From IMG/VR virus record IMGVR_UViG_3300042516_005475, positions 62,001 through 126,000 of that record: a stretch of DNA of 64,000 nt; one strand, given 5' to 3'. This document shows, piece by piece, positions 10,449 to 46,739 of this stretch (position 1 is the first letter of the stretch; every line of letters starts with the position of its first letter). Both the position numbers and the translations under genes were made by a program. Under the pieces are notes generated by a model that worked only from the letters and a program-made list of their open reading frames with translations, was not told the DNA's origin and searched no databases.

Positions 10449-10928
10449 ATGGCAACAGTAAACTTAAACAATCTCTTTAAGAAGCCAGTCAATCCTAATA
10501 GTGCTATAAAGTACATTTATCAGGACTTTAATGTCATGTCTATGGAAACACTTTATACCAATAACATTGCTGCTCGTAAAGTAAAGACTGACCTTAATGT
10601 TTCTTACGATGTCGCTGCTGTTAAAAACAGTATTTCTAATCTTTTAACAACAAAGAAGAGTGAAAAGATATTAAGCCCAGAATACGGTTTAAGAATAGAA
10701 GATTTTTTGTTTGAACCAGTTACAAGCACAACAGCTACTGCCATTGCCAACGAGATTGTCAATGCTTTAACAATATTTGAACCAAGAGTTCAAATAGTAG
10801 ATTTGCAAGTGATACCTTATCCAGATCAATACCTTTATGTAATTAATCTGGCATTGAGAATACCAACATTAAAACAATCTTTTTCCTTGCAAGGAACATT
10901 TCAAGGAGACGCAATAACAATTTTATAA
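10449..10928 (+). CDS. Baseplate wedge subunit, T4 gp25-like
   Basis: AVKNSISNLLTTKKSEKILSPEYG...FLFEP...FEPRV matches the gp25/GPW family signature. Confidence 0.9.
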   Translation: MATVNLNNLFKKPVNPNSAIKYIYQDFNVMSMETLYTNNIAARKVKTDLNVSYDVAAVKNSISNLLTTKKSEKILSPEYGLRIEDFLFEPVTSTTATAIANEIVNALTIFEPRVQIVDLQVIPYPDQYLYVINLALRIPTLKQSFSLQGTFQGDAITIL

Positions 10929-10929
10929 T

Positions 10930-21183: not shown

Positions 21184-22473
21184 ATGAGTTCCGCCTCTAA
21201 CGATAAGATTTTTTGCCAAATAGCTGCATATAGAGACCCCCAACTAATCCCAACGCTTAGAAGCATGATTGACAATGCTTCGAACCCAGACAACCTTGTA
21301 TTTTGTATTGCCTGGCAACGCGACAAGAGAGATGAGTTTGATAATCTAGAGATTTTTAGCCAGGATCCTAGATTTATTATTATTGAAATTCCTGCTATGG
21401 AGAGCAAAGGAGCCTGTTGGGCTCGTAACTTAATCCAGCAGCGCTATAATGGGGAAGGTTATACTCTTCAAATTGACAGCCACATGCGCTTTGTAAAAGA
21501 TTGGGACAGTAAATGCATCAGTATGATTAAGCAGCTACAAGAAACTGGCTATGAAAAGCCTTTGTTAACAAGCTATGTTAGCTCTTTTGACCCTGATGAT
21601 GATACTAAGTTTGTAAAAGAGCCATGGAAGATGAAGTTTGATCGCTTTATTCCAGAAGGAGCAATATTCTTCTTACCTGAAACAATTGATGAATGGCAGC
21701 ACTTAACAACACCTGTAAAGGCTAGATTCTATTCAGCTCACTTTTGCTTTACTTTGGGCACAATGTGTCAAGAGGTTCCACATGACCCAAATTATTATTT
21801 CCATGGTGAAGAAATTTCAATTGCTGTAAGAGCCTTTACTCACGGCTATGATTTATTCCACCCACATATGATTATTTGCTGGCATGAATATACTCGTAAG
21901 GGTAGAACCAAGCATTGGGATGACCACGTTGAGTCAAATAAAGAGGTGGTACCGTGGCATATTCGTAACAATGATTGCCACAAGCGTAATAGATGCTTGT
22001 TTAGCATGGATGGTGAGAAACATGAGTCTGTTGATTGGGGTATGTATGGTTTTGGTACTAAGCGTACTCTAAAAGATTATGAGGACTATGCTGGTATTAA
22101 TTTTAAGCTAAGACTTGCTCATAAGTTTACTACAGACAATGTTGATTATCCTCCTAATCCAATTGTTTATAAGAATGATGAAGAGTGGAAGTCTAAGTGC
22201 TTGAAGAATTACGACATACAGGTTCAGATAAAAGAAGAATATGAAAATAACCCAGACGTTCTATTTTGGTTCTTTGGAGTTCACAACGCCTCTGGAGATG
22301 AATTGTTCAGAAAAGACTTTACCTATGATATGTTAGAGAAGATTAGAAATGAGAACATTAAGTCTGAACTTGTAACAATTCGCACTAATGATAAGCCCGC
22401 TAAGTATATTATTTGGGTGCACAAGAAAGAAACCGGTTGGGGGCAAAGATTTGAAATACCAATTAACGTATGA
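21184..22473 (+). CDS. GT60-family (Pfam GlcNAc; Skp1-hydroxyproline / mucin-type alpha-GlcNAc transferase-like) glycosyltransferase
   Basis: IFCQIAAYRDPQL, SKGACWAR, YTLQIDSHMRF (DSH metal motif), VPHDP..YFHGEEI..AVRAFTHGYDLFHP...WHEY.R. Confidence 0.85.
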   Translation: MSSASNDKIFCQIAAYRDPQLIPTLRSMIDNASNPDNLVFCIAWQRDKRDEFDNLEIFSQDPRFIIIEIPAMESKGACWARNLIQQRYNGEGYTLQIDSHMRFVKDWDSKCISMIKQLQETGYEKPLLTSYVSSFDPDDDTKFVKEPWKMKFDRFIPEGAIFFLPETIDEWQHLTTPVKARFYSAHFCFTLGTMCQEVPHDPNYYFHGEEISIAVRAFTHGYDLFHPHMIICWHEYTRKGRTKHWDDHVESNKEVVPWHIRNNDCHKRNRCLFSMDGEKHESVDWGMYGFGTKRTLKDYEDYAGINFKLRLAHKFTTDNVDYPPNPIVYKNDEEWKSKCLKNYDIQVQIKEEYENNPDVLFWFFGVHNASGDELFRKDFTYDMLEKIRNENIKSELVTIRTNDKPAKYIIWVHKKETGWGQRFEIPINV

Positions 22474-24146
22474 ATAACGAAGTAACATTTGTAACAGGTC
22501 TTTGGGATTTAGGTAGAGATAAAATTGGAGGTGGTTTTAGGAGAGATTTTAACTCTCATTACCTGCCACAATTTCAAAACTTACTTGCTCAAAATATTAA
22601 TTTAATTATTTTTTGTGATAAAGATGTAGAAGAGTTTGTGTGGAGACATAGAGAACCTCGTAACACCCTTGTTATTAACAAACCTCTTGAATCCTTTAAA
22701 ACAAATTTTGATTTTTACAATCAAGTCCAGAATATTCGTAACAAACCTGAATGGAAAAATCAGGCTGGTTGGTTAGCTGACAGCCCGCAGAGCTCTCTTG
22801 AATATTATAACCCAGTTGTAATGAGTAAGTTCTTTATGTTGCATGATAGCTGCATAATGAACCCATTTAATACTGAGCATTTTTATTGGATTGATGCAGG
22901 TATTTCATCTACTGTTAACCTAAGTTATTTTTCAACATTTAATGTTCATAATAAACTTTCAAAATACATTTCCAGTTTATTGTTTGTTTGTTTCCCGTAT
23001 GATGGACAAGTAGAAATTCATGGGTTTACTAAGAGTAAATTTAATGAGTGCTGTAATGCTGACTCACAATATGTTGCAAGAGGTGGTTTTTTTGGTGGTA
23101 AGAGTGACTATATTAAGAAGTTTAACCCCAAATATTATGATACTCTTCGCTCTACTTTAAGTGAGGGTTATATGGGTACAGAGGAGAGTATTTTCACAAT
23201 TCTTTGCTATCTTTACCCAGAAGATATTTGCAGAGTAATGATTGAAGATAATGGTTTGCTTAATACTATATTTGAGGCTCTTAAAAACGACTCTATTGTA
23301 GTAGAAAGACCTATAAACTCTAAAAATTTTAAAATTCCAACATTAGAAGAGATTAAAATTTATGTATTAACATTCAATAGCTGCTCACAACTTGAATTGC
23401 TATTAAACAATTTTACTATTACGTATCCTGAATTGATATCAATTAAAGATAAAGTATTAATTAACAATAGTACAGAAAGAAGCTATGATGAGTGCTATAA
23501 AGAAATAGCTGATAAATATGGGTTCACTATTCAAAACTTCGACAACATTGGTATTTGTGGCGCGCGTCAATGGGTAGCTGAAGATTTTGAAAAATCTGAT
23601 AAGAGTTATTATATCTTCTTTGAAGATGATATGTTGTTTAATACTGATTTTACTTATTGTAAGAATGGTTTTAGCACCAAAGCTAATGATTTGTTTAACA
23701 AGAGCCTTAAAATTGTTGAAAAAGAAGCATTAGACTATCTTAAAATAAGCTTTTCAGAGTTTTTTGGTGGTAATAACCAACAGTGGGCTTATTGTAATGT
23801 GCCTCAGCAAGTAAGGCTAGATAATTTTGGTGATTTAAAGCTACAATTTCCAAGAGATTATGACAAGATTCCAGGGACTGTTACTTATTCTATAGGCTCT
23901 TTTGAAGGATTGCCATATGCTATTGGGGAGTTTTACTATTGTAACTGGCCATTACTGTTCACAAAACAAGGCAATCGCAAGGTTTTCCTTGATACTAAGT
24001 GGGGACACCCGTATGAACAAACATGGATGTCGTATGTATTTCAGGAGCAGCGTAAGAAAAACATAAAGGCTGGTTGTTTGTTACTCTCTCCAATAGCTCA
24101 TAACAGAGTTTATTTCTATAAAGCACAGGATAGAAGAGAGAGCTAA
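22470..24146 (+). CDS. Bifunctional glycosyltransferase: HtrL/YibB-like N-domain + GT-A (GT2-like) C-domain
   Basis: N-half TFVTGLWDLGR...YNPVVMSKF...NPFNTEHFYWIDAG...GGFFGG...GTEESIFT. C-half NIGICGARQW...YYIFFEDDM (DxD-like). Overlaps the GT60 stop (ATGA). Confidence 0.75.
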   Translation: MNNEVTFVTGLWDLGRDKIGGGFRRDFNSHYLPQFQNLLAQNINLIIFCDKDVEEFVWRHREPRNTLVINKPLESFKTNFDFYNQVQNIRNKPEWKNQAGWLADSPQSSLEYYNPVVMSKFFMLHDSCIMNPFNTEHFYWIDAGISSTVNLSYFSTFNVHNKLSKYISSLLFVCFPYDGQVEIHGFTKSKFNECCNADSQYVARGGFFGGKSDYIKKFNPKYYDTLRSTLSEGYMGTEESIFTILCYLYPEDICRVMIEDNGLLNTIFEALKNDSIVVERPINSKNFKIPTLEEIKIYVLTFNSCSQLELLLNNFTITYPELISIKDKVLINNSTERSYDECYKEIADKYGFTIQNFDNIGICGARQWVAEDFEKSDKSYYIFFEDDMLFNTDFTYCKNGFSTKANDLFNKSLKIVEKEALDYLKISFSEFFGGNNQQWAYCNVPQQVRLDNFGDLKLQFPRDYDKIPGTVTYSIGSFEGLPYAIGEFYYCNWPLLFTKQGNRKVFLDTKWGHPYEQTWMSYVFQEQRKKNIKAGCLLLSPIAHNRVYFYKAQDRRES

Positions 24147-28000: not shown

Positions 28001-28597
28001 TTTAACTATTATGTGTCAGATGTAGCAGGGGATGTAGAAAAGATTACTTTACAGGCTAATTTAGAAACATTAGCTAACCAAGATTTATTCTTTACATTTA
28101 CTTTTAATTCTCTTACTGGTGGTTCTAAGCTCTATATTAATAGTATCTTGGTTGAAGAATCTGATACTACTAATATTAAGTATTCCAAGACCCCTATCTC
28201 TGGTTCTATAGCCTTAAATTCTATTTCATTGACTGACCCAGCCTTTGAGTCTACTCAATTCAAGTGTCAAAACCTTGAGATGTACGGTATAAAGGCCTTC
28301 AACACAGTGTTATCAAAATATGATATTAGAAATCTGTTTATTAGATCAGCTAGAATTACAGATATAAACTGGAACGTTCCAGCAGGCAAGAGAAACATAA
28401 CTGAAACCATTCAGCAGAACTTTAAGTTTAGTTTACCAGGTTATAAGACCAACTTGTTTGATATTATTGTTTCAGGAGCTCAAGGATTAAACGATGTACA
28501 AAGAGAAGCAATTGCTGAAAAAATAAGAGAGTACATAAAGGGTAACATTCCGATAAATACTATTATTAACGAGGTTAACATCAGAAGTAATGAATAA
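25061..28597 (+). CDS. Large virion structural protein (beta-rich; LamG-like segment near C-terminus)
   Basis: 1178 aa, TAATG-coupled; FFTFTFNSLTGGSKLYINSILV resembles LamG/ConA strands. Confidence 0.55.
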   Translation: MNVLNLSALIPMEVEYSLDGNVNLTNNITNYFYGLNLYSTELFNFARDLSINYYNTFILTDKLDKPDFLTLSEPITASYPKTISTTVQCVGLSSTGLGFWEDYAANYSSTSPYLSCGEGIFSTGSIWNLGSWNMYDIEFLNANQCYISKLRNNNSVLTQLQTKEYLGPAFTEDVNYLTFSSTPYTFNYIYNEQNNTIVFYFNYAPNGSSSNSLFLITQEENRVVLKSVDEYVISDLGLYNLSAVFCLSYRDANTRLAEFTTNYNAYKRTYFPTAETSLCDSYDGLKNNYLVSSNVVFTDNKFLVNFQPLKNQLDLNYNFTATNSFIGQPFDNRDYQSIVSGTDQELGFPNLTLTFYTYNAPITFKKGALTYFHFPVSATPFDKLNVNDSTLVDCGSFAGQNPLDADKVFKKLLPTVAGNNIDKNQTGTYLCTWLYISAFDSRPIWMDRYYNPNFTSLQTAYTQNFNSDFVNTVTTLSAKNFTYFDKVSDLTFEPNSTYSYYRLSEADIARINNNLYENQINSDVINVYDANLNLQQAGAASFEYGFNTGSLVQKTSASGDYSICFNIKSKDFKKKFGNTLLNNFYNLNGLNITNYDNLNNLILFTSGSEIVVSNTNFDSLRNVKVLLEKSIFKTPDALLSIDFNNNVEGFYVTSISTLSSNVGINLNVGPNTSDFYLSKLDKNFTTLNTILLTSFSGGTYNFVSSNIDDTYYYALFNTFNTQVAATNQNYFLIKYPLSGMLLSQPINTPVNLQLPRYGSVNGNSITISDFTLCRSTYNFILSAGLPVYYLTDYANNSICSDVNNRAWYIYNNILYHSVTDLGNLDGFNLSYLKDSNNNQTITNVTTDNSGNIYLISDNGTDSYLYKLDNNRKPIYFQSLSSSFGAPTTKYLDILYVNNNGVIEPRPYVIYDPYQPSSLSARSFKEVNVFDASGNLIYIKPLEYETDTFNISNQNRKGFRRTLSNVEQVNNLFEVDGNPIKFNYYVSDVAGDVEKITLQANLETLANQDLFFTFTFNSLTGGSKLYINSILVEESDTTNIKYSKTPISGSIALNSISLTDPAFESTQFKCQNLEMYGIKAFNTVLSKYDIRNLFIRSARITDINWNVPAGKRNITETIQQNFKFSLPGYKTNLFDIIVSGAQGLNDVQREAIAEKIREYIKGNIPINTIINEVNIRSNE

Positions 28598-31500
28598 TCT
28601 ATATTCAGTTGTATCAAATTCATTAGGGTTCAACAGAGCAATTTCTATTGAACCAGAAAAATTCCCTGTATTGCTAGAGGATATTTTAATCAAACCTAAT
28701 GATTTTCTAACAGAGAATAATTTTAACTTTTCTCTATCCTGCTTATATCAAGACTTTTTGTCTATTGTAAGTGATAGCTATGTTTATAGTCCCAATTTTC
28801 CAGTAACAAACCCGTTTTTTGATAATATTAATAACATTGTAGGTACTCTTTGTGGTACATTAGTTCCTTCTAACTATTCAACTGAAGGAACAGCTTCTAT
28901 TAGATATTTTGTAAATGGTATTCCGCACAGTAATGCAGCTTTTAACATAATTTACAACACTCATGATTTCGTTATCAGTGGTAATTATTTGACTTTAGCA
29001 GTAGGTATTTTAAGCACTACAACTTTATCTCCTATTCTTTCTTCTAATGTTTATTATCCTGCTTTAGGAGTTTATAACTACCCTCTTTCAGCTATTTTTA
29101 ATAATGGAGAGGTAACAAATAGTAGTGAATTTCCTAATCAAGGTTTCCAAGAAAGCGCTGTTGTACCTAATTTTGGTGTTGTAACAAAGTTCTTAAATAA
29201 GAACTTGAATTTAAAGTATAACTCAATTTCAAAACTTAAGATAGCCAATGAAAGGTTGTATGTTTTAGATAATATTAGTAACAAGTTTTTAATTTACGAC
29301 ATTAGTGATGTTATAGTTAATAGAACAAATAAAACAACTTTTGAGGTACCGCTTGAAACATTAGGTTTCGCAACATCTTCAAGAACAAATATAAGAAAGA
29401 TTAGCTCTTTTTGTGTTAATGAGAACTATGTTGTATTCTTTAACTATGTTAACAACGCTCTTTCTATTTTCTCAACTAATTTAAACCAGTTATATGATTA
29501 TTCTCAAGACAAAGTATCTGTTTCTGGGTTTAGAAATACAGAAGTATTTGCAGATATAGAGTTTGATCCGTTCGGTAATTTGTATTTGTTAACGCAAAGT
29601 GGCACTGTTTATGTTTATACAGTTTCAAATACCGCTTTAACAAGAGTAAAAACATATAATATCCAACCACAAAACACAAACGTATTTTCTTCTTTATCTG
29701 CAATTCAAGTTACCTATCAGAAAGAGATATTTAAAAAGATATCATTCTCAAAATCTGATACAAATGTATTTTATGTATCTACAGATACTAACATCTACAA
29801 GAGATTTGTAGATAGAAATGTAAACATTGGTCAGTTTAATAACTTTGTTAATAACACAACATATTATTCTACTCTAAGTAATATTGCTGACCCATTTAAT
29901 ACGTTAATGGGTTGCTGTTTTGCTGAATATCCTGCTGAAAAGACCTCTCTAGACTTTTTAAAGTATCAAATTAATAGCACTAACAGTATTAGTTATAACG
30001 GTTATGAGATTTTTTCTGTATGCTTTACAGATAACTGTACGTACGCCTCTCAAAACGCTGGCCCTGGCTTTGTTTTAAATGTTGGTTCATATGGTTCAAT
30101 TGATTTTTTAACAGCTAATCTAACATATGGATTAAACCCGGTTTCTGCCTCTGGTATTACATTTGTTGTAGATAGGCCTAACTATATAAATTTAAATAAT
30201 GACGATTTATCAGCTGTTCTGGTTTATTCCTTTGATGACATCAAGGTAAAGGCAGATGAATTCATTACAGACTTTACAATAAACAAGTCTTTGCGCAAGC
30301 TGTTATATAATATTTTTAATTATCAGACTTATCAAGCCTTTAAACCTGTTGTAGATATTGATATTAACAATAATGCAATTTATAAAAAGCTTGATTACAT
30401 TGTTTCTTACAATAAAAATCAAAATATTACTAATTTTGATAATTTTATAGGTATAAATGAAATTACAAGCACAGTATTTTTAAATAGATGTTTTACTAAA
30501 GTTTACGAATTGCTTGCAACAATGCAAGCCAATTTTAACTCTAGAGTAATTAATATCTACCCTAGATATGCAGATTCAGTTTTGTTAAACCAAACAACAC
30601 AAAAATATGCATCGTTTTATAATGATAGTGAGACGTTTATTACTGGTGAGTTTGACACTGAAATTGAACCTTTAAATCCTAATCTCTGTGTTGTTGAGAA
30701 TGCTAGTACAATTGTAGTGTCTCCAACACCATCCCAGACCCCTTTAGTTTCTCCAATAGTCTTTGTTACACCTACACCTACACCAGCCCCTTCTCCTACA
30801 ATGCCGCCAACACCTACATCTTCCGGGTATGTGTTGGTGAATAAATCTATTCAACATGTCGCTACAGTTTATCTAAACAACGAGTACGAAATTCCAGTAC
30901 CAATAGCACCTTTCCCAAACTACGACATTAAGCCTCTTTCAGCTATTTATGATGGGACAGGAATTGATACTATTGTTTCAGAGTTTAGTGCATATTTTGA
31001 CCAGGGAGAGTTTTATATTGAGCTAGCTAAAGTTAACGGTGATTATGAAAAATTAGTAGGTAAGCAATTTGGTGATTACATACTTCAGAGTTATACACCA
31101 TCGAATAATAGTGAGTTTATTTTAGGGGCAAGAACGTGTTTACAAGAAACACACACCATAGAAAGTTTATCTCCTACACCAACACCATCTATAACCCCAA
31201 CCAATACAGTTACACCTACAGTAACACCGACTATTACCCCAACTAGTACAGTTACCCCTACAGTAACACCGACTATAACTACAACACCCGCTAATACAGT
31301 TACTCCAACCAACACTGTTACCCCTACAGTAACACCAACTAACACTGTTACTCCAACCAATACGGTTACACCTACAGTAACTCCTTCTGTAACCCCAACA
31401 ACAGGTCTTTCTCCAACACCAACTCAAACAATAACCCCTACAAATACAGTTACTCCTACAGTAACACCAACTAACTCTGTAACCCCTACAGTAACACCAA

Positions 31501-32318
31501 CCAATACAGTTACACCAACCAATACAGTTACACCAACAAACACAGTAACCCCAACAGTAACACCACCAGTTACAGTAACACCAACTAACTCTGTAACCCC
31601 TACAGTAACACCAACCAATACAGTTACACCAACCAATACAGTTACACCAACAAACACAGTAACCCCAACAGTAACCCCAACAGTTACAGTAACACCAACT
31701 AACTCTGTTACTCCAACAGTTACAGTAACACCAACAGTAACACCACCAGTTACAGTAACACCAACTAACTCTGTTACTCCAACAGTTACAGTAACCCCAA
31801 CAGTAACACCACCAGTTACAGTAACACCTACAGTTACAGTAACACCACCAGCTACAGTAACACCTACAGTTACAGTAACCCCAGCAGCTACAGTTACTCC
31901 AACACCAACCCCCTCATCCCCACAATCTTGCCTTGAGCCCCTAACAACAGTTAGATGGGTATTGTGGAACCCTTACAATGATACAGACCCTTCGACTTTA
32001 GTTAATGCTGTAGTTAATTATACTCTCTCTAATAATTCAGGTAGCTCAACTTTCGGTTCCGGTACTCAATCCGTTCCAGTTGGAGCTTTTGGACAATCAC
32101 CAGCTGGTACATATTATACTTTAGGTACAACAAGTGATTGTTGTTCAGCGCCTTATACAGGTACTTTATTTTACACCTTATCTTGGGTAAATAGTTATGG
32201 GGTTTCTCGAGCAAATCGAGATATACCAGATTATTCAAACTCAGAAAACTACTGTAGTTGGGCAGCATCGTTACCTGTAGAGAGTGGTTTACCGACGTTT
32301 ACTTTAACTCTTAGTTAA
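28590..32318 (+). CDS. Large virion protein with propeller-like region, long Thr/Pro linker and Cys-containing C-terminal domain
   Basis: 1242 aa. NHL-like DIEFDPFGNLYLL and [15 protein letters not shown] repeats at about 31170-31920. Confidence 0.65.
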   Translation: MNNLYSVVSNSLGFNRAISIEPEKFPVLLEDILIKPNDFLTENNFNFSLSCLYQDFLSIVSDSYVYSPNFPVTNPFFDNINNIVGTLCGTLVPSNYSTEGTASIRYFVNGIPHSNAAFNIIYNTHDFVISGNYLTLAVGILSTTTLSPILSSNVYYPALGVYNYPLSAIFNNGEVTNSSEFPNQGFQESAVVPNFGVVTKFLNKNLNLKYNSISKLKIANERLYVLDNISNKFLIYDISDVIVNRTNKTTFEVPLETLGFATSSRTNIRKISSFCVNENYVVFFNYVNNALSIFSTNLNQLYDYSQDKVSVSGFRNTEVFADIEFDPFGNLYLLTQSGTVYVYTVSNTALTRVKTYNIQPQNTNVFSSLSAIQVTYQKEIFKKISFSKSDTNVFYVSTDTNIYKRFVDRNVNIGQFNNFVNNTTYYSTLSNIADPFNTLMGCCFAEYPAEKTSLDFLKYQINSTNSISYNGYEIFSVCFTDNCTYASQNAGPGFVLNVGSYGSIDFLTANLTYGLNPVSASGITFVVDRPNYINLNNDDLSAVLVYSFDDIKVKADEFITDFTINKSLRKLLYNIFNYQTYQAFKPVVDIDINNNAIYKKLDYIVSYNKNQNITNFDNFIGINEITSTVFLNRCFTKVYELLATMQANFNSRVINIYPRYADSVLLNQTTQKYASFYNDSETFITGEFDTEIEPLNPNLCVVENASTIVVSPTPSQTPLVSPIVFVTPTPTPAPSPTMPPTPTSSGYVLVNKSIQHVATVYLNNEYEIPVPIAPFPNYDIKPLSAIYDGTGIDTIVSEFSAYFDQGEFYIELAKVNGDYEKLVGKQFGDYILQSYTPSNNSEFILGARTCLQETHTIESLSPTPTPSITPTNTVTPTVTPTITPTSTVTPTVTPTITTTPANTVTPTNTVTPTVTPTNTVTPTNTVTPTVTPSVTPTTGLSPTPTQTITPTNTVTPTVTPTNSVTPTVTPTNTVTPTNTVTPTNTVTPTVTPPVTVTPTNSVTPTVTPTNTVTPTNTVTPTNTVTPTVTPTVTVTPTNSVTPTVTVTPTVTPPVTVTPTNSVTPTVTVTPTVTPPVTVTPTVTVTPPATVTPTVTVTPAATVTPTPTPSSPQSCLEPLTTVRWVLWNPYNDTDPSTLVNAVVNYTLSNNSGSSTFGSGTQSVPVGAFGQSPAGTYYTLGTTSDCCSAPYTGTLFYTLSWVNSYGVSRANRDIPDYSNSENYCSWAASLPVESGLPTFTLTLS

Positions 32319-32380: not shown

Positions 32381-35300
32381 ATGGAATACGATAAGCCAGC
32401 AAAAATTGTATGGGTAGCTAAGCTATCAGCCACTGGGTTATATGATACTCCATTTTTAAAAATCGTTGACCCAACTACAGCACCTCAAAATATAGTCAAT
32501 GAATATACGGATTTAGGGTTAGAAAACTATACAATAAATAATTATTTTGTTAATACAAATTTACTTTTTAGTATAACAGATAATGAATTAAACACTAATA
32601 GAAAAACCTTTAACTGGACTTTTAGTGCCTATAAGGGACCATCTCAGGCTGCTTCTGCAATGATAGCGGTTAATTATTTTAACAATTATACTGCTAACGA
32701 TATGGGGTTGGTTATTAATTATAATAACCAGTATCTATCCCCACCATTTTATTTTGATCCTTATGAAACAAGCCCTAACCCTACCGCTTCTAAAACATTT
32801 ATAGTTCCTGCTGGTGCTCAAAATTTTCCTATACCGCTATGGGTGAGAGTAAATGATGGTTCTGCCATATCAACTTTTACATGTTTAGTTTGTACTAACC
32901 CTTCTATTATTTTAACTAATAATATTGCGAGATATTCCAATATATTTGTTACCCCATCACCAACACCAACAAATACAGTTACTCCAACTACTGGATTATC
33001 TCCAACTGCGACTCCTACTAATACACCTACCAACACCGTAACCCCTACAAATACCCCAACCAATACTGTTACTCCTACAAATACTCCAACCAATACTGTA
33101 ACACCAACAGTTACTCCAACTAATACTGTAACAGTAACACCCACTATCACCCCAACCAACACAGTTACTCCAACCAATACAGTAACACCAACCAATACTG
33201 TTACACCAACTAATACTGTTACACCAACAGTAACACCAACAAATACTGGTACTCCAAACAATACAGTTACACCAACAAATACAGTAACACCTACAGTTAC
33301 ACCAACCAACACAATCACCCCAACCAACACAGTAACACCAACCAATACAGTAACACCAACCAATACTGTTACACCAACTAATACAGTAACACCAACTAAT
33401 ACGGTTACCCCTACAAATACTGTTACTCCAACCATTACACCAACCAATACAGTAACACCAACTAATACAGTAACACCAACTAATACAGTAACACCAACAA
33501 TTACTCCTTCCAACACAGTAACACCAACCAACACAGTAACTCCAACAATTACACCAACAATTACCGTCACTCCTACAAACACAGTAACACCTACAATTAC
33601 TCCTTCCAACACAGTAACACCAACCAACACAGTAACACCAACAATTACACCAACCAATACTGTTACACCAACCAATACTGTCACACCTACCAATACAGTA
33701 ACACCAACAATTACTCCTTCCAACACAGTAACTCCAACAAATACGGTTACTCCAACTAATACAATTACACCTACAAATACGGTTACACCTACAAATACTG
33801 TTACACCAACAGTAACAGTAACACCAACCAATACAGTAACACCAACCAATACAGTAACACCAACAATTACTCCTACACCACCACAACCACCGAGCAAGAG
33901 AGCGATATTTGGTTTCGGTAGTACAACTTTTGGTGGTTTTGGGTCTCCTACTTCTCTTTCCAACATAGTATCAGATACTGGTGTATTGGCTTCAGATGTA
34001 ACTAATGTTGGTACGTCTGCTAGACTTTATCTAGCTGCTGCTAGTTTTGGTGATGGTTTAGCTATTTTTGGTTTCGGTTATAATAATGGTAATGCTGTTG
34101 GGGTGTATAACCCTGTAAATAATAGCGGAGAAATTGGAATTGATGATACCCGTGGTAGTTTTACTGCTAGATATCAGTTAGCGGCTGCAAGTTACGGTGG
34201 AGATAAAGCAATATTCGGGTTCGGTTCCACAACCTCAGGAGTAAGTTCTATTACAAATCTGGTAGATAATTTAGGTCAAATGGGTAATAATGTATCTACT
34301 GTTGGTACAGCTAGAAATAACCTCGCCGCTGCAGGTTATGGTACAGATAAAGCTATATTTGGTTTTGGTTTTTCAACAGCTATAACAAATATAACAAACC
34401 TTGTATCCAATACTGGTGTAATAGCTGCAGATGTAACAACCATTGGTACAGCAAGACAGATATTAGCTGCAGCTAGTTATGGTGGAGATAAAGCTATTTT
34501 TGGTTATGGTTATACTTCAAGCTTTGTTTCTTTAACAAATGTAGTAACTAACACAGGAGTAGTTGGAAGTGATGTAGGAGGGATTGGAACAGCTAGAGGC
34601 TATCTAGCAGCAGCAGGATACGGAACGGATAAAGCAATATTCGGGTTTGGTATAAACGGGTTTGGTGGTTCTACTTTGTCAATGACAAACCTAGTATCTA
34701 ACACAGGTGTTGTTGCTAATGATAATAGTACAGTTGGTACAGCTAGAATGGGTTTAGCAGCAGCAAGCTTCACTCAATATTTTGCACCTTCTCCAACACC
34801 TACTCCATCTATAACACCTTCTGAGACAGTTACACCAACAATTACTCCAACGGTTACACCTACAAATACGGTTACCTCAACCAATACAGTAACACCAACA
34901 ATTACCCCAACCAATACAGTTACACCAACAATTACCCCAACCAATACAGTTACACCAACCAATACAGTTACCCCAACAATTACACCAACCAATACAGTTA
35001 CACCAACCAATACAGTTACACCAACCAATACAGTTACACCAACAATTACCCCTACACCTGGAGCTACATCTACACCAACCAACACAGTAACACCAACAGT
35101 TACAGTTACACCAACCAATACAGTTACACCAACCAATACTGTTACACCAACCAATACTGTTACTCCAACAATAACCCCAACAAACTCATATACTGGTCCA
35201 GATAGAGCTATATTTGGTTTCGGACAATCATCTGGAAACACAGGTACAAATATAACTAATTTAGTTTCAGATACTGGCGTTGTAGCTTCTGATCTTTCTG

Positions 35301-38300
35301 GAGTAGGTACTGAAAGATCGCAACTTGCTGCTGCAAGCTATGGTTTTGATAAGGCTATTTTTGGTTATGGTGGTGGTCCATCCAACGCCTACAATAATGT
35401 TTCTACTTTAGTAAACAATTTAGGTGTAGTAGTTACTGATCAATTAGGTGTTGGTACTGGCAGAAAAGGTCTAGCAGCAGCTGGTTATGGTTACGATAAG
35501 GCGATTTTTGCTTTTGGGCGAACCTCTTCTGGAAATGTAAATATTTCAAATCTTGTGACTAATTTTGGTGTTATTGGCACAGATAATGCAAGTGTAGCCA
35601 CTTCTAAAGAAAACTTAGCAGCAGCTGTTTATGGTTACGATAAAGCAATTTTTGCATATGGTAGTAATTCAGGTGTTACAAATACAACCAACATTGTTTC
35701 AAATCTAGGAGTAATTTCTACAGATACAGCAGGAGTAGGAACAGCAAGATCAAGTCTCGCAGCAACAGGTTATGGCATGGATAAGGCAATATTTGGTTTT
35801 GGCTCTACAACTATTAATGTAAATATTACCTCGTTATTTTCAAATACAGGCTCTTATGTTAGTGAGAGTTCTGGTGTCGGTACTGCTAGAATTTATCTAG
35901 CAGCCACAGGTTACAATCAAGATAAAGCAATATTTGGTTTTGGTTTCGCTGGATTCTTTGCCTCCATGACAAATCTTGTTTCTAATATTGGCAATATTGC
36001 TGCTGATAATAGTACAGTAGGTACTGGAAGGTATGGGTTAGCTGCTGCAAGATTTGGTGGTATACTTCCAACTCCAACAGCTACTCCAACAGTTACTCCA
36101 ACAGTTACTCCAACTACCGGGCTATCTTCTACTCCAACTAATACAATTACACCAACTAATACAGTAACACCTACAATAACACCTACAATAACACCTACAG
36201 TAACACCTACCAATACAGTTACACCTACAATCACTCCAACGATTACTCCTACTCCAGCACCAATACAAAATTATAGTGGTATTTTTGGTTTCGGTACAAG
36301 TACTTCTGGAGGGAATACATCAATTACTAATTTATTAGTATCTAACATTGGTATTCTTGAAAATGATGTAACTACTGTTGCTACTGCCAGAAGTGAATTA
36401 GCAGCAGCAACTTACGGTACAGATAAAGCCATATTTGCTTTTGGGTATATTAACTCTGTCGGTGTTCAAAATATATCTAATTTAGTAACTAATGAGGGAG
36501 TTGTTGGAACCGATCAATCAACAGTAGGTACTTCTAGAAACCGTCTTGCAGCAGCTGGTTATGGTATAGATAAAGCTATTTTTGGTTACGGTTATAATGG
36601 AGGCTATTTGTCATTGACAAATATAGTTACTAATACCGGTGTTGTTGGTAGTGATCAAGGGGGGATTGGTACTGCTAGAGCTGATCTAGCAGCTGCTACT
36701 TTTGATAGAGATAGGGCAATTTTCGGTTTTGGAACTAATAACACTAATTTGTCAATGACAAATATAGTTACTAATACCGGTGTTGTTGGTAATGATGTAT
36801 CAAGTATTGGTACTGCTAGAAGAGGTCTAGCAGCTGCTACTTATGATGTAAATAAAGTTATATTTGGTTTCGGTAGTGTAGGAATTAGTGCTCCTGTATC
36901 AATAACCAATTTGGTTTCTAATACTGGTATTGTTGCTTCTGATACCTCTAATGTTCAAACAGCTAGAAGCGGTCTTGCTGCAGTAAGTATTGGTACTGAT
37001 AGAGCTATGTTTGGTTTTGGCTTTAGTAATACTGCTACAAATATTACAAATCTAATTAGTAATTTAGGAACAATTGTTACAGAAAATTTTGGTACTGGCA
37101 CTACAAGATACAGTCTAGCAGCTGCGAGCTTTGTTTATGTAGCCCCTACACCTTCCCCAACAATTACTCCAACAATTACTCCAACAATTACTCCAACAAA
37201 TACAGTAACACCAACTAATACACCTACCAATACAGTAACACCTACAGTTACACCTACCAATACAGTTACACCAACGAATACACCACCAAATACACCACCA
37301 CCTCAATCAGATAAGAGCGCAATATTTGGATATGGTACCAATGGTAGTTTTGGAAATAACTTATCAATGACCAATTTAGTATCTAACGCTGGTGTTGTTA
37401 CTATAGATCAAACCGGGGTTGGAACTGCAAGATATGGTTTAGCTGCTGCAAGCTATGGTGGAGACAAGGCAATATTTGGATATGGTTATGTTTCAGCTGG
37501 GTCTGGAGTACAGAATATAACCAACAAAGTTTCAAATCTTGGTATAGTTGCTAATGATGATGCTGGTGTCGGTACTCAAAGATTCTATTTAGCTGCAGCT
37601 ACCTATGGTACTGATAAAGCAATATTTGGATATGGTCAAAATAGTTCATTTGTTGGAGTTACAATAACCAATTTAGTGAATAACATTGGTAATGTTGCTT
37701 CAGACGTAACTAGTGCTGGTACTGCAAGAAGCGCATTAACATCTGCTAGCTACGGTTACGATAAGGCAATATTTGCTTTAGGTAACGGAAGTGTAATTAA
37801 TAAGATTTCAAACACTGGTATTGTTGCTTCAGATTCAAGTGGTACACCTCCAACAGCTCGAAATGGTGCTTTCGGTGCTGGGTATGGTTATGATACAGCT
37901 ATACTTGGTTTTGGTTATGATGGAACACATTTAAATACTATAACACTAATTAACAACCAAGGAGACGTTGTCACTAATACTACTGGAGGTGGTTCTTCTA
38001 GAGCTTTTGGTGCTTCAGCAAGCTATAGTACTGATAAGGCAATATTTGGTTATGGTAGTACTACTAGTTCTGCTTCGTCTGTAATAACTCTTATTTCAAA
38101 CACAGGTACAGTCGCATCAGAATCATCCGGAGTTGGTACAGCAAGAAGCAGTCTAGCTGGAGCAAGCTATGTTTCTGGTATTGCTCCGTCACCTACAGCT
38201 ACAACAACAATTACACCAACAGTAACACCTACCAATACAGTTACACCAACCAACACAGTAACACCAACTAACACACCAACTAACACAGTTACTCCAACAG

Positions 38301-41300
38301 TTACAGTTACACCAACCAATACAGTTACACCAACAAACACAGTTACACCAACTAACACAGTTACACCAACAATTACCCCAACTAATACAGTTACAGTTAC
38401 ACCTACTAACACAGTAACACCTACTAACACAGTAACACCAACACCTACGAGTACACCAGGTGCTTCTGTAACACCAACAGCTACTCCATTTGCTTTAACA
38501 AATAAAAATGCAATATTTGGTTTTGGACAAAATAATAGTGGCTCTCCCGTTTCTATGACTAACATAGTAGCTACTAATGGTAATGTGGCTTCAGATGTAA
38601 CTAGTGTTAATACAGCAAGAAGTGGTTTGGCTGCAGCTAGCTATGGTGGAGATAAGGCAATATTCGGATATGGTTATTCTAATACATTTGTTTCTATTAC
38701 TAACTTAGTTTCCGGTGCTGGTGTTGTTGCTTCAGATGTATCTAGTGCTGGTACTGCTAGATGGGCCTTAGCTGCAGCAAGTTTTGGTACTGATCAAGCG
38801 ATATTTGGTTACGGTTATAATGGTGCAGGTATTTCTATAACTAATAAAGTTTCTAACACTGGTATTGTTTCTTCTAATAATAGTACAGTTGGCTCAGCAA
38901 GAGGTAGATTAGCGGCAGCAGGTTATGGTTATGATAAAGCAATATTCGGTTATGGTTATATTTTTGAAAGCTTTGCATATGTTTCTATCTCTAATTTAGT
39001 ATCTAATACAGGTAATGTTGCTGCAGATGTTACAAATGCCGGTTCAAGACAATACCTAGCTGCGGCTGGATATGGTGGAGATAAAGCTATTTTTGGTTTT
39101 GGTGACTTTGGTAGTTATACAAATATTACAAACAAGGTTTCAAACACCGGTATTGTTGCAGCTAATACAAATGTTACTGGTACAGCTAGAAATGGTCTAG
39201 CAGCTGCTAGCTATAGTACAAATTTAGCAATATTTGGTTATGGTTATACCGGTTCAGCGTTATCAATGACCAATAAAATAAATTCAGATGGGGATGTAGC
39301 TTCTGATATAACTGGGGTTGGTACAGCTAGATATTATTTAGCTGCAGCAAGTTTTGGTCCTGAAATAATACCAACCCCAACAACTACTGCTTCAAACACA
39401 CCGACTAATACAGTGACCCCTACAGTTACACCAACTAACACAGTAACTCCAACTAACACAGTAACTCCAACCAATACTGTTACCCCTACAAATACAGTTA
39501 CACCAACTAACACTGTAACTCCAACTAACACTGTTACTCCTACAAATACAGTTACTCCAACAATTACACCAACTAATACAGTTACACCAACTAATACAGT
39601 TACTCCAACCATTACAGTTACACCAACAAACACACCAACTAACTCTGTTACACCAACAGTTACAGTTACTCCAACAATTACACCAACAATTACACCTACA
39701 CAAGATAATACATATTGCTTCCAAACTCCAGTACAAACTGTATATTTAAATAACTTTGATATTTGTCAAAATTATATAAAAGACCAACTTTTTGCCTCAA
39801 ATCTTCAATCAAGAGGGGCTTCTGATCTTCGAAAAATTCTCCTTTATATTACTCAAGTACTACCAACTACAAGCAACATATTAAATAATTCTAACTGGGG
39901 AGACTTTGGTACTACTAACGCTGCTTATAGTGTAATTTACACTTTTAATGGAATAGTTGGCGGTAAAAATCAATATTATGTATCAATAGAATGGTCATAT
40001 TCTGGTAATGTTGAACCCTATCAAATAGCTTATATTAGCTATCTATCATATAATAATAATACTGGTCAATGCGCGATTGATATGTGCTTGTTGAATGTTA
40101 TTCAATATTTTAATGTAACACCAACCCCAACAGTTACACCAACAGTTACAGTAACTCCAACCAATACAGTAACACCAACAAATACAGTTACACCAACAGT
40201 TACACCAACCACTACAGTAACCCCAACAAATACTGTTACCCCTACTGTTACCCCTACTGTTACAACGACAACTGGTTTATCTCCTACAATTACCCCTACA
40301 ATTACTCCAACAAACACTGTAACTCCAACAATTACACCAACCAATACAGTAACACCAACAATCACACCAACCAGCACAGTTACTCCTACAAATACTGTTA
40401 CTCCTACAAATACTGTTACACCTACAAATACTGTAACTCCAACCAATACAGTAACACCAACAGCTACTGTAACTCCAACTATCACTGTTACACCAACTAA
40501 TACAGTAACTCCACCCAATACTGTTACTCCAACCATTACAGTTACACCAACAATCACACCAACTAACTCTGTTACACCAACAATCACACCAACCAATACA
40601 ATCACACCAACAATTACACCCACACAAGATAACACATATTGTTTTCAGACTCTTAGAGTCCCAGTATATTTAAACAGCTTTGCAAGTTGTCAGGGTTATA
40701 TTTCTGGCTTAATTAGTTCTTCTAACATTGGTTCAAGAGGAGCAACAGATATTGTTAAGATTCTACGATACATTGTTAATAACTATAACCCTAGTGTTAA
40801 TATTTTAAATAATACAGACTGGGGAATTTATGGAACAACTGGTGGTGCTTATAGTGTACTTTATACTTATAATGGAATAGTATCTGGTAACAATGAATAT
40901 TATGTTTCTATTGAGTACACAACAGGGACACAGCAAATTCAAGTTGCTTATATCAGCTGGATGACTACAAATCTATCCCCTGGTTCTTGTATATTTGACA
41001 TGTGTTTAATTAATATTCTAACTTTTACTAATATTGATCCAACACCTACCCCAACTCCATCAGTAACTCCAACCAATACAGTAACTCCAACAAATACAGT
41101 TACACCAACCAACACAGTAACTCCAACTAATACAGTTACACCAACCAACACAGTAACACCAACAATTACACCAACTAATACAGTTACACCAACAGTTACA
41201 CCAACTAATACAGTTACACCAACCAACACAGTAACGCCAACAATTACACCAACTAATACAGTTACACCAACTAATACAGTTACACCAACAGTTACACCAA

Positions 41301-42982
41301 CTAATACAGTTACACCAACCAACACAGTAACGCCAACAATTACACCAACCACCACAGTAACGCCAACAATTACACCAACTAATACAGTTACACCAACAAT
41401 CACTCCCACAATTACACCTACACAAAAGAATACATATTGCTTCCAGTCTCCGGATACTGAACCATACATTAATAATTTTGCCGATAGTAAGAATTATATA
41501 ATTAATGCTATTGATTCTTCTAATATTGCTTCAAGAGGCGCAACTGATATAGCTAAGATTCTTAAGTTTGTTGTAAGCAGACTATATTTAGTTGGAAATA
41601 TATTTAATAATTATAGTTGGGGAGCATATGGTACAACTTCAGCAGCCTATAACGTAGTTTTCACTAATTTCGGTCCAGAGGGTAGCAATCAGAAATATTA
41701 CTTTGAAATTCAGCCAAGTTATGTAACACCAACTCAATATATTGCATATTGTTCATATTTGTTCTTCAATATGAATACTGGTACAATGTTAGTTGATATG
41801 TGTTTACTTAATATTTTTGATTATAGTAACTTCCCAGCAACACCAACACCTACAATTACTGTTACTCCAACTCAATCGTTAACACCAACTAATACAGTTA
41901 CACCAACTAATACAGTTACACCAACTATAACTCCAACCAAAACAGTTACCCCTACACCAAATAGTACCTTAACTACTCCAACTACCCCAACTTTAACTCC
42001 AACCAAGACAGTTACACCAACAGTTACAGTAACACCAACAGTAACTGTAACACCAACAGTAACTGTAACACCAACAGTAACCCCAACAGCCTCTCCTGTT
42101 TTAACAAATAAACAAGCTATTTTTGGTTATGGTCAAGGGGATAGCGGTATACTTTCAAAATCTAACACAGTTACAAATCTTGGTGTAGTTAATATAGATC
42201 AAACCGGGGTTGGAACTGCAAGATATGGTTTAGCTGCTGCAAGTTACGGTGGAGATAAGGCAATATTTGGATATGGCGCAAGTGATATTAAGCTTTCTAT
42301 AACCAATACTGTTACAAATCTTGGTATAGTTAATGCTGATCAAGCAGGAGTTGGTACAGCAAGACTTTATTTAGCTGCTGCAAGTTATGGTGGAGATAAG
42401 GCAATATTTGGCTTTGGCTTCGATGGAGGTTATACAAGTACAACCAACACTGTTACAAATCTTGGTATTGTTAATTCAGATACAAGTAGCGTAGCCACAT
42501 CAAGAGCTAATTTAGCTGCTGCAAGTTATGGTGGAGATAAAGTAATATTTGGTTTTGGAGCAACATACTCAGCGGGTAATGTTTTCTATAATAAAACCTC
42601 ACTATTTTCTAATACAGGTGTGTATGTTAGTGAAACTGACAATATTGTAACTGAAAGAGGTTTCCTCGCTGCAGCTGGTTACGGAACAGATAAAGCAATA
42701 TTTGCTTATGGTTTTAATAATAGCGGGTTCCTTTTATTAACTAATAAAGTTACAAATACAGGCACTCTTGGTTCAGATACTACTGTTGCCGGTACTGCTA
42801 GATACGCTTTAGCAGCAGCTGGTTATGGTGGAGATAAGGCGATATTTGGGTTTGGTTTCTCAAGCGACTATAGTGTTGTTAATACTACTACCTTATTTGA
42901 CAATCAAGGTAATTTTGTTAGTGAAAATTCTGGGGTTGGTACTGCAAGATACGATCTTGCAGCAGCAAGCTTTGGTAGCTAA
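32381..42982 (+). CDS. Giant (3533 aa) mucin-like multidomain protein: six Kelch-like 6-bladed propellers, three YCFQ domains, nine Thr/Pro linkers
   Basis: Continuous ORF. 36 copies of a ~47-aa unit AIFG(F/Y)G...TN.VSNTG.V..D...VGTAR..LAAA.YG.DK, in groups of six separated by TPTNTV arrays. Confidence 0.8.
32951..33890 (+). repeat. Degenerate coding tandem repeat (18-nt TPTNTV and 12-nt TPTI/TPTV units), longest of the Thr/Pro arrays
   Basis: Recurring ACACCAACYAAYACAGTW units. Similar arrays at about 18621-18980, 20420-20800, 31170-31920, 34787-35182, 36068-36260, 37144-37300, 38185-38487, 39371-39700, 40118-40625, 41039-41422 and 41840-42095. Confidence 0.95.
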
Positions 42983-43022
42983 TGCATCTTGTTTTTTGTG
43001 AAGTTTCTTGTTAATAACATTG

Positions 43023-46664: not shown

Positions 46665-46739
46665 GGGAGGTTAGCTCAGCGGCAGAGCAGATCCTTTACA
46701 CGGATAAGGCCAGAGGTTCAAATCCTCTACTTCCCACCA
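46665..46739 (+). tRNA. tRNA-Val(TAC)
   Basis: Acceptor GGGAGGT/ACTTCCC, anticodon loop TT-TAC-AC, T-arm AGAGG-TTCAAAT-CCTCT, encoded CCA. Confidence 0.93.

Follow-up and report, generated by a model that had tools for sequence, protein, structure and literature searches.

The window analysed here, a stretch of 64,000 nucleotides from the IMG/VR virus record IMGVR_UViG_3300042516_005475, raises the question what a gene for 3,533 amino acids, largely made of repeats, contributes to a bacteriophage, and whether such a gene is real at all. The source phage is uncultured and known solely through lake-water metagenomes; its genome of 230 kb is rated 100% complete. The adhesin-like gene (32381-42982, plus strand) consists of a single, stop-free ATG-to-TAA frame. 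The DNA of its Thr/Pro-coding linkers is highly repetitive, and short-read unitigs end in every one of these linkers, which speaks for an assembly artefact, or for a decaying pseudogene swollen by repeat mis-assembly. Against this stands, besides the 10.6 kb of open frame, a second assembly in IMG/VR, derived from a different sample. It is identical (100.000%) to the gene region over 11,383 nt, a match that covers the gene to within 29 nt of its stop codon, where the fetched locus ends. Moreover, the linker repeats are merely 70-80% alike at the DNA level, a sister phage carries an intact orthologue of 2,710 aa, and in four lake-water runs most of the unique domains were matched exactly, with even depth among the matches listed. 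The 3′ part of the gene (domains C3 to M6, described below) was present in 20 lake-water runs, and one lake run contained a strain variant of propeller M4 with 22 differences in 459 nt. The giant gene is not an assembly artefact, the open reading frame named in a preliminary description of this DNA is borne out by its intact frame and the letter-for-letter identical independent assembly, and we give next to no credence to an artefact or a swollen pseudogene.

Segmentation of the protein into domains and linkers revealed a chain of ten globular beads, namely an N-terminal domain, six propellers and three orphan domains, separated by Thr/Pro linkers and all encoded on the plus strand. The chain opens with the N-terminal globular domain (32381..32953, aa 1-191), the presumed virion anchor, and with linker 1 (32954..33892, aa 192-504), which at 313 aa is the longest tether (T 47%, P 20%, V 13%, N 13%) and is encoded by about 42 imperfect 18-nt repeats with a 70% match. 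Propeller M1 (33893..34783, aa 505-801) is joined by linker 2 (34784..35188, 135 aa) to M2 (35189..36067, aa 937-1229), which linker 3 (36068..36259, 64 aa) connects to M3 (36260..37147, aa 1294-1589). After linker 4 (37148..37303, 52 aa) follow M4 (37304..38191, aa 1642-1937), linker 5 (38192..38479, 96 aa), M5 (38480..39364, aa 2034-2328) and linker 6 (39365..39709, 115 aa). The orphan domain C1 (39710..40117, aa 2444-2579), a Cys-containing α/β domain, linker 7 (40118..40630, 171 aa), the orphan domain C2 (40631..41029, aa 2751-2883), linker 8 (41030..41425, 132 aa), the orphan domain C3 (41426..41836, aa 3016-3152) and linker 9 (41837..42094, 86 aa) lead to the C-terminal propeller M6 (42095..42982 including the stop codon, aa 3239-3533), which served as the modelled module. 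Each propeller comprises six blades, blades 4 and 5 of M4 being the most degenerate. The preliminary description had seen six beads on a string; its six propellers and the Thr/Pro tethers between them are real, but its count was incomplete, as it overlooked the three Cys-containing domains of about 135 aa between propellers 5 and 6. The parts of the giant protein are of known kinds, while their combination is unusual.

The nine linkers (52-313 aa each) add up to 1,164 aa or 33% of the chain, with an overall composition of T 47%, P 20%, V 13% and N 11% and 553 Thr codons. Their repeat unit is an imperfect TPTNTV hexapeptide, and as long Pro/Thr/Ser-rich tandem repeats they are mucin-like (PTS) sequences. 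Because the underlying 18-nt DNA repeat matches at only 70-80%, the units are not recent perfect copies. Strains as well as positions differ in linker length, which spans 41 to 351 aa. Extended PT-rich spacers between autonomous modules in a beads-on-a-string arrangement are likewise found in bacterial cellulases and scaffoldins. In these secreted bacterial enzymes the Pro/Thr linkers part carbohydrate-binding from catalytic modules, are often glycosylated and usually measure 20-100 aa, whereas the phage linkers reach 313 aa and are encoded in a viral structural cluster.

A pattern scan of the giant protein located the starts of 36 blades, grouped six by six, with the groups opening at nt 33902, 35207, 36278, 37319, 38510 and 42116. 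The blades have a length of 43-53 aa and are about 48-50% identical to one another irrespective of their position, and the six groups are collinear from end to end with identities of 49-55%. The AF2 model of M6 (pLDDT 97.2, pTM 0.93) shows a closed six-bladed propeller. A Foldseek search of the PDB with this model retrieved Kelch domains (TM 0.80-0.84, E 4e-16), and superposition with KLHL17 by VIA-align gave a Z of 33.7 and an rmsd of 2.4 Å over 282 of 293 residues. M1-M5 align collinearly with the modelled M6 and should therefore be six-bladed propellers too. The preliminary description had noted six modules with exactly six repeats of about 47 aa, with starts that agree with ours within a few bases, and had inferred closed six-bladed rings; for M6 the model is indeed a ring and not a solenoid.

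The relationship to Kelch proteins is confined to the fold. Even with E allowed up to 1, modules 1 and 6 matched no Pfam Kelch model; PF01344, searched against all six frames of the genome, matched 0 of 48 blades, and the profile of the propeller family retrieved no Kelch chain from the PDB at E <10. Since no Kelch sequence model matches, we regard the propeller as Kelch-like by fold only. The Kelch consensus consists of four hydrophobic residues and a Gly doublet, followed by a conserved Tyr and Trp. In the phage blades, the motif AIFG[FY]G provides a hydrophobic run and G-x-G, and an Arg before strand A as well as a Tyr after it are nearly invariant; a conserved Trp was found in none of the blades. 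The phage module and human Kelch domains (KLHL17, KLHL12, KLHL20, Keap1; PDB 6hrl, 2vpj, 8cia, 6fmp) share six four-stranded antiparallel blades of about 47-50 aa, a hydrophobic strand with a terminal Gly pair, behind which comes a long variable B-C loop, a conserved Arg before strand A, and a module that opens with a B strand and closes with an A strand. They differ in sequence (12-18% identity only, no conserved Trp) and in setting, as the phage protein lacks BTB/BACK partners, is viral and presumably extracellular, and repeats whole propellers six times in one chain.

Across the 36 blades, column entropy peaked at columns 7-17, the loop of variable length behind the FG.G motif, and at columns 43-44, the two positions following T-A-R, as the preliminary description had noted; a third, weaker patch occupies columns 34-36. 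Orthologous propellers of two phages differ at 29% of positions in the B-C loops and 21-33% in the D-A loops, compared with 8% in the C-D turn and 6-9% in strands A and B. S, G, T, N and Y abound at the variable positions, where charged residues account for <5%. In Kelch domains, the loops after strand B and before strand A share one face, which is the ligand-binding one. By analogy with this topology, the variable loops would form one face of the phage propeller. The best sequence hint to a lectin, the Photorhabdus protein PHL, was below significance (E 0.098).

M1-M6 belong to a large, unnamed phage propeller family of 834 clusters at 50% identity, which is entirely unannotated and has no Pfam model. 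Among sampled members the propeller is located at the C-terminus in 262 of 280 proteins, a group has six blades in 256 of 285 cases, and the blades form a single run in 276 of 280 proteins, a count in which modules separated by short linkers, as in P0279 with its four, are taken as one run. Six propellers per chain is the highest number among the proteins sampled. Partner domains include Laminin_G_3, Mtd_N and collagen, and the contexts are phage-like; a Thr/Pro linker occurs in only 17 of 178 longer members and measures at most 155 aa. Family members such as UniProt A0A6J7XFV6 ("uncharacterized protein, uncultured Caudovirales phage") and the metagenomic P0279 are homologues of the present modules at 45-61% identity and E down to 1e-155, with six blades, on phage contigs and usually as the C-terminal tip. 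What sets the giant protein apart from them is its six modules, its linkers totalling 1,164 aa and its three orphan domains.

The AF2 model of C1 (pLDDT 79.7, pTM 0.82) found no structural relatives, the best hits reaching Z 5.0 and, in AFDB, TM <0.4. C2 is 53% identical to C1, and a further copy of this domain (38% identity to C1, 28 invariant columns in the alignment) forms the C-terminus of a 770-aa protein (17097..19409, plus strand) with its own N-terminal part and a Thr/Pro linker. The N-terminal domain (aa 1-191) matched nothing in Pfam, PHROG or the Atlas, has no paralogue in the 230-kb genome, and does not begin with a signal peptide-like sequence.

Comparison with related phages separates a conserved N-terminus from exchangeable distal parts, as expected for receptor-binding proteins. 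The N-terminal domain is 97% identical in the sister phage and 76% in a second related contig and is thereby more conserved than the propellers, whose identities to the sister phage are 95% (M1), 54% (M2), 77% (M3), 73% (M4) and 87% (M6). The orthologue of the sister phage comprises five propellers and one orphan domain: M5, C1 and C2 are absent, and C3 (93% identity) is the sole orphan-domain copy kept. M2 and its positional counterpart share just 54% identity, so M2 was swapped or replaced. Furthermore, the modules are closer to those of other phages (56-61% identity) than to their siblings (47-56%) and are hence not recent tandem copies.

The genomic context points to the tail. Genes similar to gp25 and gp6 of the baseplate wedge (10449..12738, plus strand, the gp6-like gene starting at 10930) were recognised by PF04965 (E 8e-15) with phrog_261 and by phrog_219 (E 7e-35), with about 28% identity to cyanophage gp6. 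They open a tightly packed co-directional run which the giant gene closes, so that the latter lies within a tail/baseplate module, the place typical of receptor-binding proteins. The run is interrupted by two glycosyltransferases and other unannotated genes, and the term "tail operon" would be a reading of gene order only. The N-terminal domain as anchor would fit both this position at the end of the gp25/gp6 cluster and the gradient of conservation. The upstream neighbour (28590..32318, plus strand, 1,242 aa) combines a Thr/Pro linker of about 250 aa, which varies in length between two assemblies that are otherwise 99.4-100% identical, with a different Cys-containing C-terminal domain. A ClpB-like chaperone gene directly follows the giant gene, a collagen-like tail fibre is encoded nearby (54443-58564), and the same genome encodes two single-propeller proteins.

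One of the two glycosyltransferases (21184..22473, plus strand) is of GT60 type, with strong matches to PF11397 ("GlcNAc", E 8e-73, 246 bits against a cut-off of 21) and phrog_24687 (E 5e-159), and is a candidate linker modifier. The second, putative one (22470..24146, plus strand) has an HtrL_YibB-like N-terminal part (PF09612, E 8e-16) and a weak phrog_842 match over aa 328-430. The GT60 family starts mucin-type O-glycosylation on Thr in protists, Trypanosoma cruzi and Dictyostelium (PMC8724618, PMC3769586). Thr/Pro-rich tandem repeats are common to protist mucin-type PTS domains and the phage linkers, and here, too, a PF11397 enzyme is at hand, encoded in the same gene cluster. Because the baseplate cluster holds such a polypeptide GlcNAc-transferase, the tethers may be truly mucin-like. 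In other viral contigs, a Thr/Pro-linker ORF lies upstream of GT60-type homologues in 45 of 48 loci and downstream in 0 of 76, although these loci represent only 2-5 sequence lineages. Unlike the protist enzymes, that of the phage could have DNA or host glycans as substrates instead of the linkers, which are candidate targets; the homologue of Xanthomonas phage XacN1 is located among replication genes. We tentatively consider it possible, though doubtful, that the GT60-type and the adjoining transferase O-glycosylate about 550 tether Thr residues together with the Thr/Pro linkers in at least six further proteins encoded in the genome, creating a viral mucin.

With moderate confidence we propose that the product of the giant gene is a late structural protein of a T4-like jumbo myovirus from fresh water, probably a long, flexible fibre that binds the host through many heads. 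The N-terminal domain, conserved and 191 aa long, would fix the chain to the baseplate or tail, and the nine extended Thr/Pro tethers, possibly O-glycosylated, would act as spacers with a reach of about 0.3 µm if fully stretched (1,164 residues at about 0.3 nm each). The B-C and D-A loops would present a variable, nearly charge-free face to ligands on the host surface, most likely glycans. With a different face on each propeller, the first contact with the cell could be multivalent, multi-specific and reversible, and the capture radius of the virion larger. Through recombination in the repetitive linker DNA, modules are acquired, lost and exchanged, as the comparison with the sister phage shows, and the host range would be retuned in this way. 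A propeller as glycan-binding head has a phage precedent in Gp45 of Staphylococcus phage φ11, which binds through a β-propeller platform. Phage φ11 needs GlcNAc on wall teichoic acid, and Gp45 (PDB 5efv) is its baseplate receptor-binding protein (PMC4901313). Gp45 differs in its five-bladed propeller, its rigid trimer and its one propeller per chain. Flexible, tentacle-like phage adhesins, with a lectin-type head, a chain of small domains and an anchor at one end, were previously proposed as tentaclins (PMC10743442). These differ from the giant protein by a C-type lectin head, Ig domains, a length of 313-650 aa and diversification by DGR (PMC10743442). A reverse transcriptase (PF00078), as demanded for a DGR, was absent from the 230-kb genome; in the giant protein, module swapping supplies the diversity.

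A flexible chain with ten beads on tethers hardly resembles a rigid fibre that transmits a signal, and it might instead be a decoration or "hair" by which the virion adheres not to the infection receptor but to material other than its host, for instance particles, algal mucilage or biofilm matrix. Ig-like capsid decorations hold phages in mucus, and the collagen-like and single-propeller proteins would supply the genome with more conventional fibres. We consider this unlikely, as the gene lies among baseplate and not head genes, module swapping behind a conserved N-terminus is the pattern of host-range determinants, and across its family the propeller caps fibre-like proteins at the C-terminus. 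Somewhat less probable still is a classical homotrimeric tail fibre, whose ordered shaft would be built from the TPTNTV repeats of three chains, with the propellers as its nodules or tip domains. The well-studied T4-type baseplate fibres are all trimers, and the strict T-x-T-x-T-x alternation could in principle build a regular β-structure; nevertheless, one Pro per six residues and 47% Thr are typical of extended disordered linkers, the free variation of linker length sits uneasily with a shaft in register, and Kelch-type propellers are autonomous monomeric folds.

An enzymatic role of the propellers on the surface polysaccharide of the host, as glycosidase, sialidase-like enzyme or oxidase in the manner of tailspike depolymerases, appears highly unlikely. 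Six-bladed propellers do include sialidases and galactose oxidase, and sialidases were among the structural matches (Z 15-18), but Kelch binding domains scored about twice as high (Z 31-34) and covered the whole model. Moreover, the Gly, Asn, Arg, Tyr, Phe and Asp residues conserved in the family occupy scaffold positions of every blade, and the surface loops, where an active site would be expected, are the most variable part. Equally improbable is a non-virion protein displayed by or released from the infected cell, serving superinfection exclusion or acting in decoy or aggregation. The adjacent ClpB-like chaperone gene would suit such a role, and we infer rather than observe the location on the particle; yet the N-terminus does not resemble a signal peptide, the gene belongs to the structural cluster, and family members are fused to fibre-type domains.

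Host recognition by phages is usually pictured as the task of fibres or spikes that are rigid, trimeric and equipped with a single binding tip. The many-headed fibre that we propose suggests another design, in which one chain carries up to ten autonomous heads on flexible, sub-micron tethers, and heads are added, dropped and swapped between close relatives. Defining the propeller family would allow thousands of metagenomic phage proteins to be annotated as probable receptor-binding tips, and single propellers, as small and confidently foldable scaffolds with CDR-like loops, may be of interest as natural binder libraries. To our knowledge, a few mycobacteriophages are so far the only phages for which virion glycosylation is documented; the conserved association of a GT60-type transferase with Thr/Pro-linker proteins offers a concrete case for mucin-type protein glycosylation in bacteriophages. 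If this holds true, stiff, protease-resistant bottle-brush stalks would carry exchangeable lectin-like propellers, and a mucin-type glycosylation system of a bacteriophage would be coupled to a cassette system for host-range modules.

The giant open reading frame at window positions 32381–42982 (+ strand) is a single open frame of 3,533 codons. The preliminary description of six groups of six Kelch-like blades on mucin-like spacers was confirmed and extended: 36 blade starts form six runs of six, only a few bases off the positions first read, and three Cys-containing domains of ~135 aa, not listed before, lie between propellers 5 and 6. The six propeller groups, designated M1 to M6, are collinear on the alignment with 49–55% identity. 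Single blades share ~48–50% identity regardless of their position, and a weak positional signal was found in blades 1 and 6 only. Sequence entropy over the 36 blades is highest where variation had been noticed, in the loop of variable length behind FG.G and at the two residues after T-A-R, with a third, weaker patch ahead of G-T-A-R. Nine Thr/Pro linkers of 52–313 aa contribute 1,164 residues in total (T 47%, P 20%, V 13%, N 11%) and are encoded by imperfect 18-nt repeats matching at 70–80%.

The gene was recovered independently of the assembled record. A second assembly (IMGVR_UViG_3300044535_002945) agrees at 100.000% identity along 11,383 nt that span the gene as far as the fetched locus extends, which is 29 nt before the stop codon, and the 3′ part of the gene, from the third orphan domain (C3) to M6, is present in 20 lake-water metagenome runs from 2020–2024. 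Short contigs from four further lake runs end within every linker, as expected of repeats; their listed M4, M5, C1, C2, C3 and M6 pieces are nearly all free of mismatches, and the depth of the domains is even where listed (14.6–20.8 in run X2). Joints between read contigs were not accepted as structural variants, as all of them had sides of less than ~50 nt inside repeats. A strain variant of M4 (window 37773–38231) with 22 differences in 459 nt occurs in a single lake run, where the other listed domains are identical except for C2 with 6 differences in 231 nt. A variant module beside identical domains points to module-specific microdiversity.

For structural modelling of module 6, 96 family sequences were aligned (alignment A2) and used as input to AlphaFold2, which gave a pLDDT of 97.2 and a pTM of 0.93 in all five models. 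The top Foldseek matches of this model are the Kelch domains of KLHL17, KLHL12, KLHL20 and Keap1 (TM 0.80–0.84, E 4e-16); designed six-bladed Kelch proteins rank alongside them. An exhaustive structural aligner superimposed the model on KLHL17 with Z 33.7 and an rmsd of 2.4 Å over 282 of 293 residues, and sialidases and other six-bladed propellers reached about half of this Z. Because the model is confident and superposes on Kelch domains, the modules are predicted to be closed six-bladed rings and not a solenoid, and together with the collinearity of the groups this supports the structural interpretation proposed earlier. Mapping of the DSSP string assigned LAAA.Y to strand A, AIFG.G to strand B, the variable loop to the B–C loop, S.TN.V to strand C and G-T-A-R-x-x to the end of the D–A loop. 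Every module begins with strand B and ends with strand A, which is the usual ring closure of such propellers. In Kelch domains the B–C and D–A loops lie on one, ligand-binding face, as established for Keap1 and the KLHL proteins; from this topology, the variable residues of the phage propellers would likewise be grouped on one face.

The modules appear to be Kelch-like by fold only. None of the Pfam Kelch models matched modules 1 and 6 at E values up to 1, PF01344 matched none of 48 blades over the whole genome, and a search of the PDB with the propeller-family profile returned no Kelch chain at E below 10, the best match being the Photorhabdus propeller lectin PHL with a non-significant E of 0.098. 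Pfam and PHROG scans of the N-domain (aa 1–191), the propellers and the orphan domain gave nothing meaningful; phrog_15511 matches the Thr/Pro linker only. The N-domain had no usable match in the ESM Atlas, and complex prediction of three N-domain copies from a three-row alignment scored 0.00 with a fold pLDDT of ~30, a result that speaks neither for a trimer nor against one.

According to profile searches, the family of the giant protein's propellers is large and lacks annotation. With a profile built from eight modules, 834 clusters (50% identity) were retrieved, 330 having E below 1e-30, and a word-indexed search gave over 2,700 clusters (90% identity), every one named ‘hypothetical’; the closest viral models are titled ‘uncharacterized protein, uncultured Caudovirales phage’. 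In a sample of 280 members, 256 of the 285 blade groups consist of six blades exactly, and the propeller reaches the C-terminus in 262 proteins. Fusion partners include Laminin_G_3, Toxin_R_bind_N-like jelly rolls, Mtd_N and collagen, in phage-like contexts. Multi-module chains are rare: two modules were found in three proteins, four in one (P0279) and partial copies in another (P0275). Six per chain is the maximum among the proteins sampled. Of 178 longer family members, only 17 have Thr/Pro linkers, with no more than 155 aa.

The modular layout differs already in a sister phage (contig IMGVR_UViG_3300017754_004939), whose flanks are ~92% identical. Its 2,710-aa orthologue retains the propeller-and-orphan-domain architecture, but the number of six propellers and three orphan domains did not hold there: it has five and one. 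The N-domain and M1 are conserved at 97% and 95% identity, M2 is replaced (54%), M3 and M4 are 77% and 73% identical, M5, C1 and C2 are absent, and C3 and M6 reach 93% and 87%. Orthologous propellers differ at 29% of positions in B–C loops and 21–33% in D–A loops, compared with 6–9% in strands A and B and 8% in C–D turns. Ser, Gly, Thr, Asn and Tyr abound at the variable positions, which bear hardly any charge. The modules are closer to those of other phages (56–61% identity) than to siblings in the same chain (47–56%); the array was therefore assembled or diverged long ago and is not a product of recent tandem duplication. The genome is without a reverse transcriptase, which rules out a DGR behind the loop diversity. 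In the upstream gene for a 1,242-aa protein, the length of the Thr/Pro linker differs between assemblies that are otherwise 99.4–100% identical (window 31571–31784 against 8351–8684 of the extracted locus L009), which indicates a repeat-number polymorphism. Repetitive linker DNA is therefore a plausible substrate for recombination.

The orphan α/β domain, with its three copies within window 39710–41836, also forms the C-terminus of a 770-aa neighbour (17097–19409), and homologues were found only within this phage clade. AlphaFold2 modelling from six sequences (pLDDT 79.7, pTM 0.82) gave two helices on an antiparallel sheet. Fold searches gave no relative, with at best Z 5.0 in the PDB and TM values below 0.4 among AFDB clusters, and the ESM Atlas yielded no usable match.

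At least seven proteins of the genome consist of an N-terminal part, the same Thr/Pro linker and a C-terminal domain. Two adjacent paralogues of 462 and 773 aa, encoded 110 kb away on the minus strand (genome record G000:C1:216520–220257; loci L002/L008), end in one six-bladed propeller each, and the 773-aa protein opens with a separate set of five ~70-aa repeats (motif PIQLSQVTNY). Proteins of 579 and 1,242 aa (window 19411–21150 and 28590–32318) carry C-terminal Cys-containing domains which may be related, with 23% identity, a pairwise E of 0.005 and aligned Cys residues. Another member of this linker ‘toolkit’ is a 458-aa protein (G000:C1:6118–7494, minus strand), in which a Thr/Pro linker joins four or five repeats of ~30 aa at the N-terminus (SSNLTETIYITSEYVSGGNTY...) to a further domain at the C-terminus.

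Within the fibre cluster lies a glycosyltransferase island (window 21184–25061) of two glycosyltransferase genes and an unannotated 300-aa ORF. The first gene (21184–22473, + strand) matches PF11397, which we take to be CAZy family GT60, with 246 bits against a cut-off of 21 and encodes a polypeptide GlcNAc-transferase-like protein; the second (22470–24146) encodes an HtrL_YibB-like protein with a second, weak glycosyltransferase-like part. GT60 enzymes of Dictyostelium and Trypanosoma cruzi are polypeptide α-GlcNAc-transferases by which mucin-type O-glycosylation of Thr residues begins (PMC8724618, PMC3769586). Homologues of the PF11397 enzyme (~50% identity) were located in 80 viral loci, with at least 3 kb of upstream sequence in 48 and at least 3 kb downstream in 76. 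Thr/Pro-linker ORFs lie upstream in 45 of the 48, on the same strand and within 400 nt in 38, and downstream in 0 of the 76; they carry Laminin_G_3 and ‘virion structural protein’ domains. No propeller modules were found within 10 kb of the homologues in other lineages, so the pairing with linkers is independent of the propeller. The synteny is partly due to shared descent, because the enzymes of the 80 loci fall into only 2–5 sequence clusters, and in Xanthomonas phage XacN1 the homologue lies among replication genes. For these two reasons, glycosylation of the Thr/Pro tethers is offered as a hypothesis that we consider less likely than not. The giant ORF325 of XacN1, which adjoins the homologue, was rejected as a relative, being unrelated and having only short PT linkers.

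The window covers positions 62001–126000 of the source virus record, which comprises 230,047 bp and is rated 100% complete by IMG/VR; the GC content around the giant gene is ~31–40%. By homology, the gene neighbourhood is of a distant T4-like myovirus type: genes for a gp25-like wedge protein (10449–10928; PF04965, E 8e-15) and a gp6-like wedge protein (10930–12738; phrog_219, E 7e-35; ~28% identity to cyanophage gp6) are followed by a run of large co-directional ORFs. dUTPase and clamp-loader genes at 8248–9786 lie between wedge-like genes at 4642–5034 and 10449–10928, so the structural cluster is interrupted by replication genes. Over the window as a whole there is no enrichment of the T4 late-promoter motif TATAAATA, which occurs 4 times against 9.6 expected; two exact T4-type copies are located directly upstream of the gp25-like gene, at 10402–10409 and 10433–10440. 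Among cultured phages, blastn and tblastn gave no relative for either the propeller or the region, and none was close. The lineage of the ‘moraphage’ jumbo-phage paper (PMC12619734) was also considered, but Kelch, propeller, ClpB and collagen are all unmentioned there and no link was established.

Starting 25 nt past the giant gene, a ClpB/ClpA-type double AAA+ chaperone (43008–45437; Clp_N, AAA, AAA_2, ClpB_D2-small) may help in folding or assembly or else serve the takeover of the host. Its homologues come from many bacterial phyla, all 29–39% identical, and were thus uninformative about the host. Genes for tRNA-Val(UAC) and tRNA-Pro(UGG) follow the giant gene at a distance of 3.7 kb (window 46665–46818 and 49252–49327), and Thr(UGU) and Asn(GUU) are also among the 24 tRNAs of the whole genome. 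The four named here are cognate to the main linker codons ACA, CCA, GTA and AAY, a match that is not specific given the near-complete tRNA set. A 1,373-aa protein (54443–58564) with 15 Collagen stretches and a tail-fibre-type C-terminus is a candidate for a conventional fibre of the same phage.

The giant protein is best read as a virion-anchored, multivalent and flexible adhesin, which we regard as probable. It would unite a phage receptor-binding protein tipped by propellers and a beads-on-a-string design based on Pro/Thr linkers, each of a kind already known.
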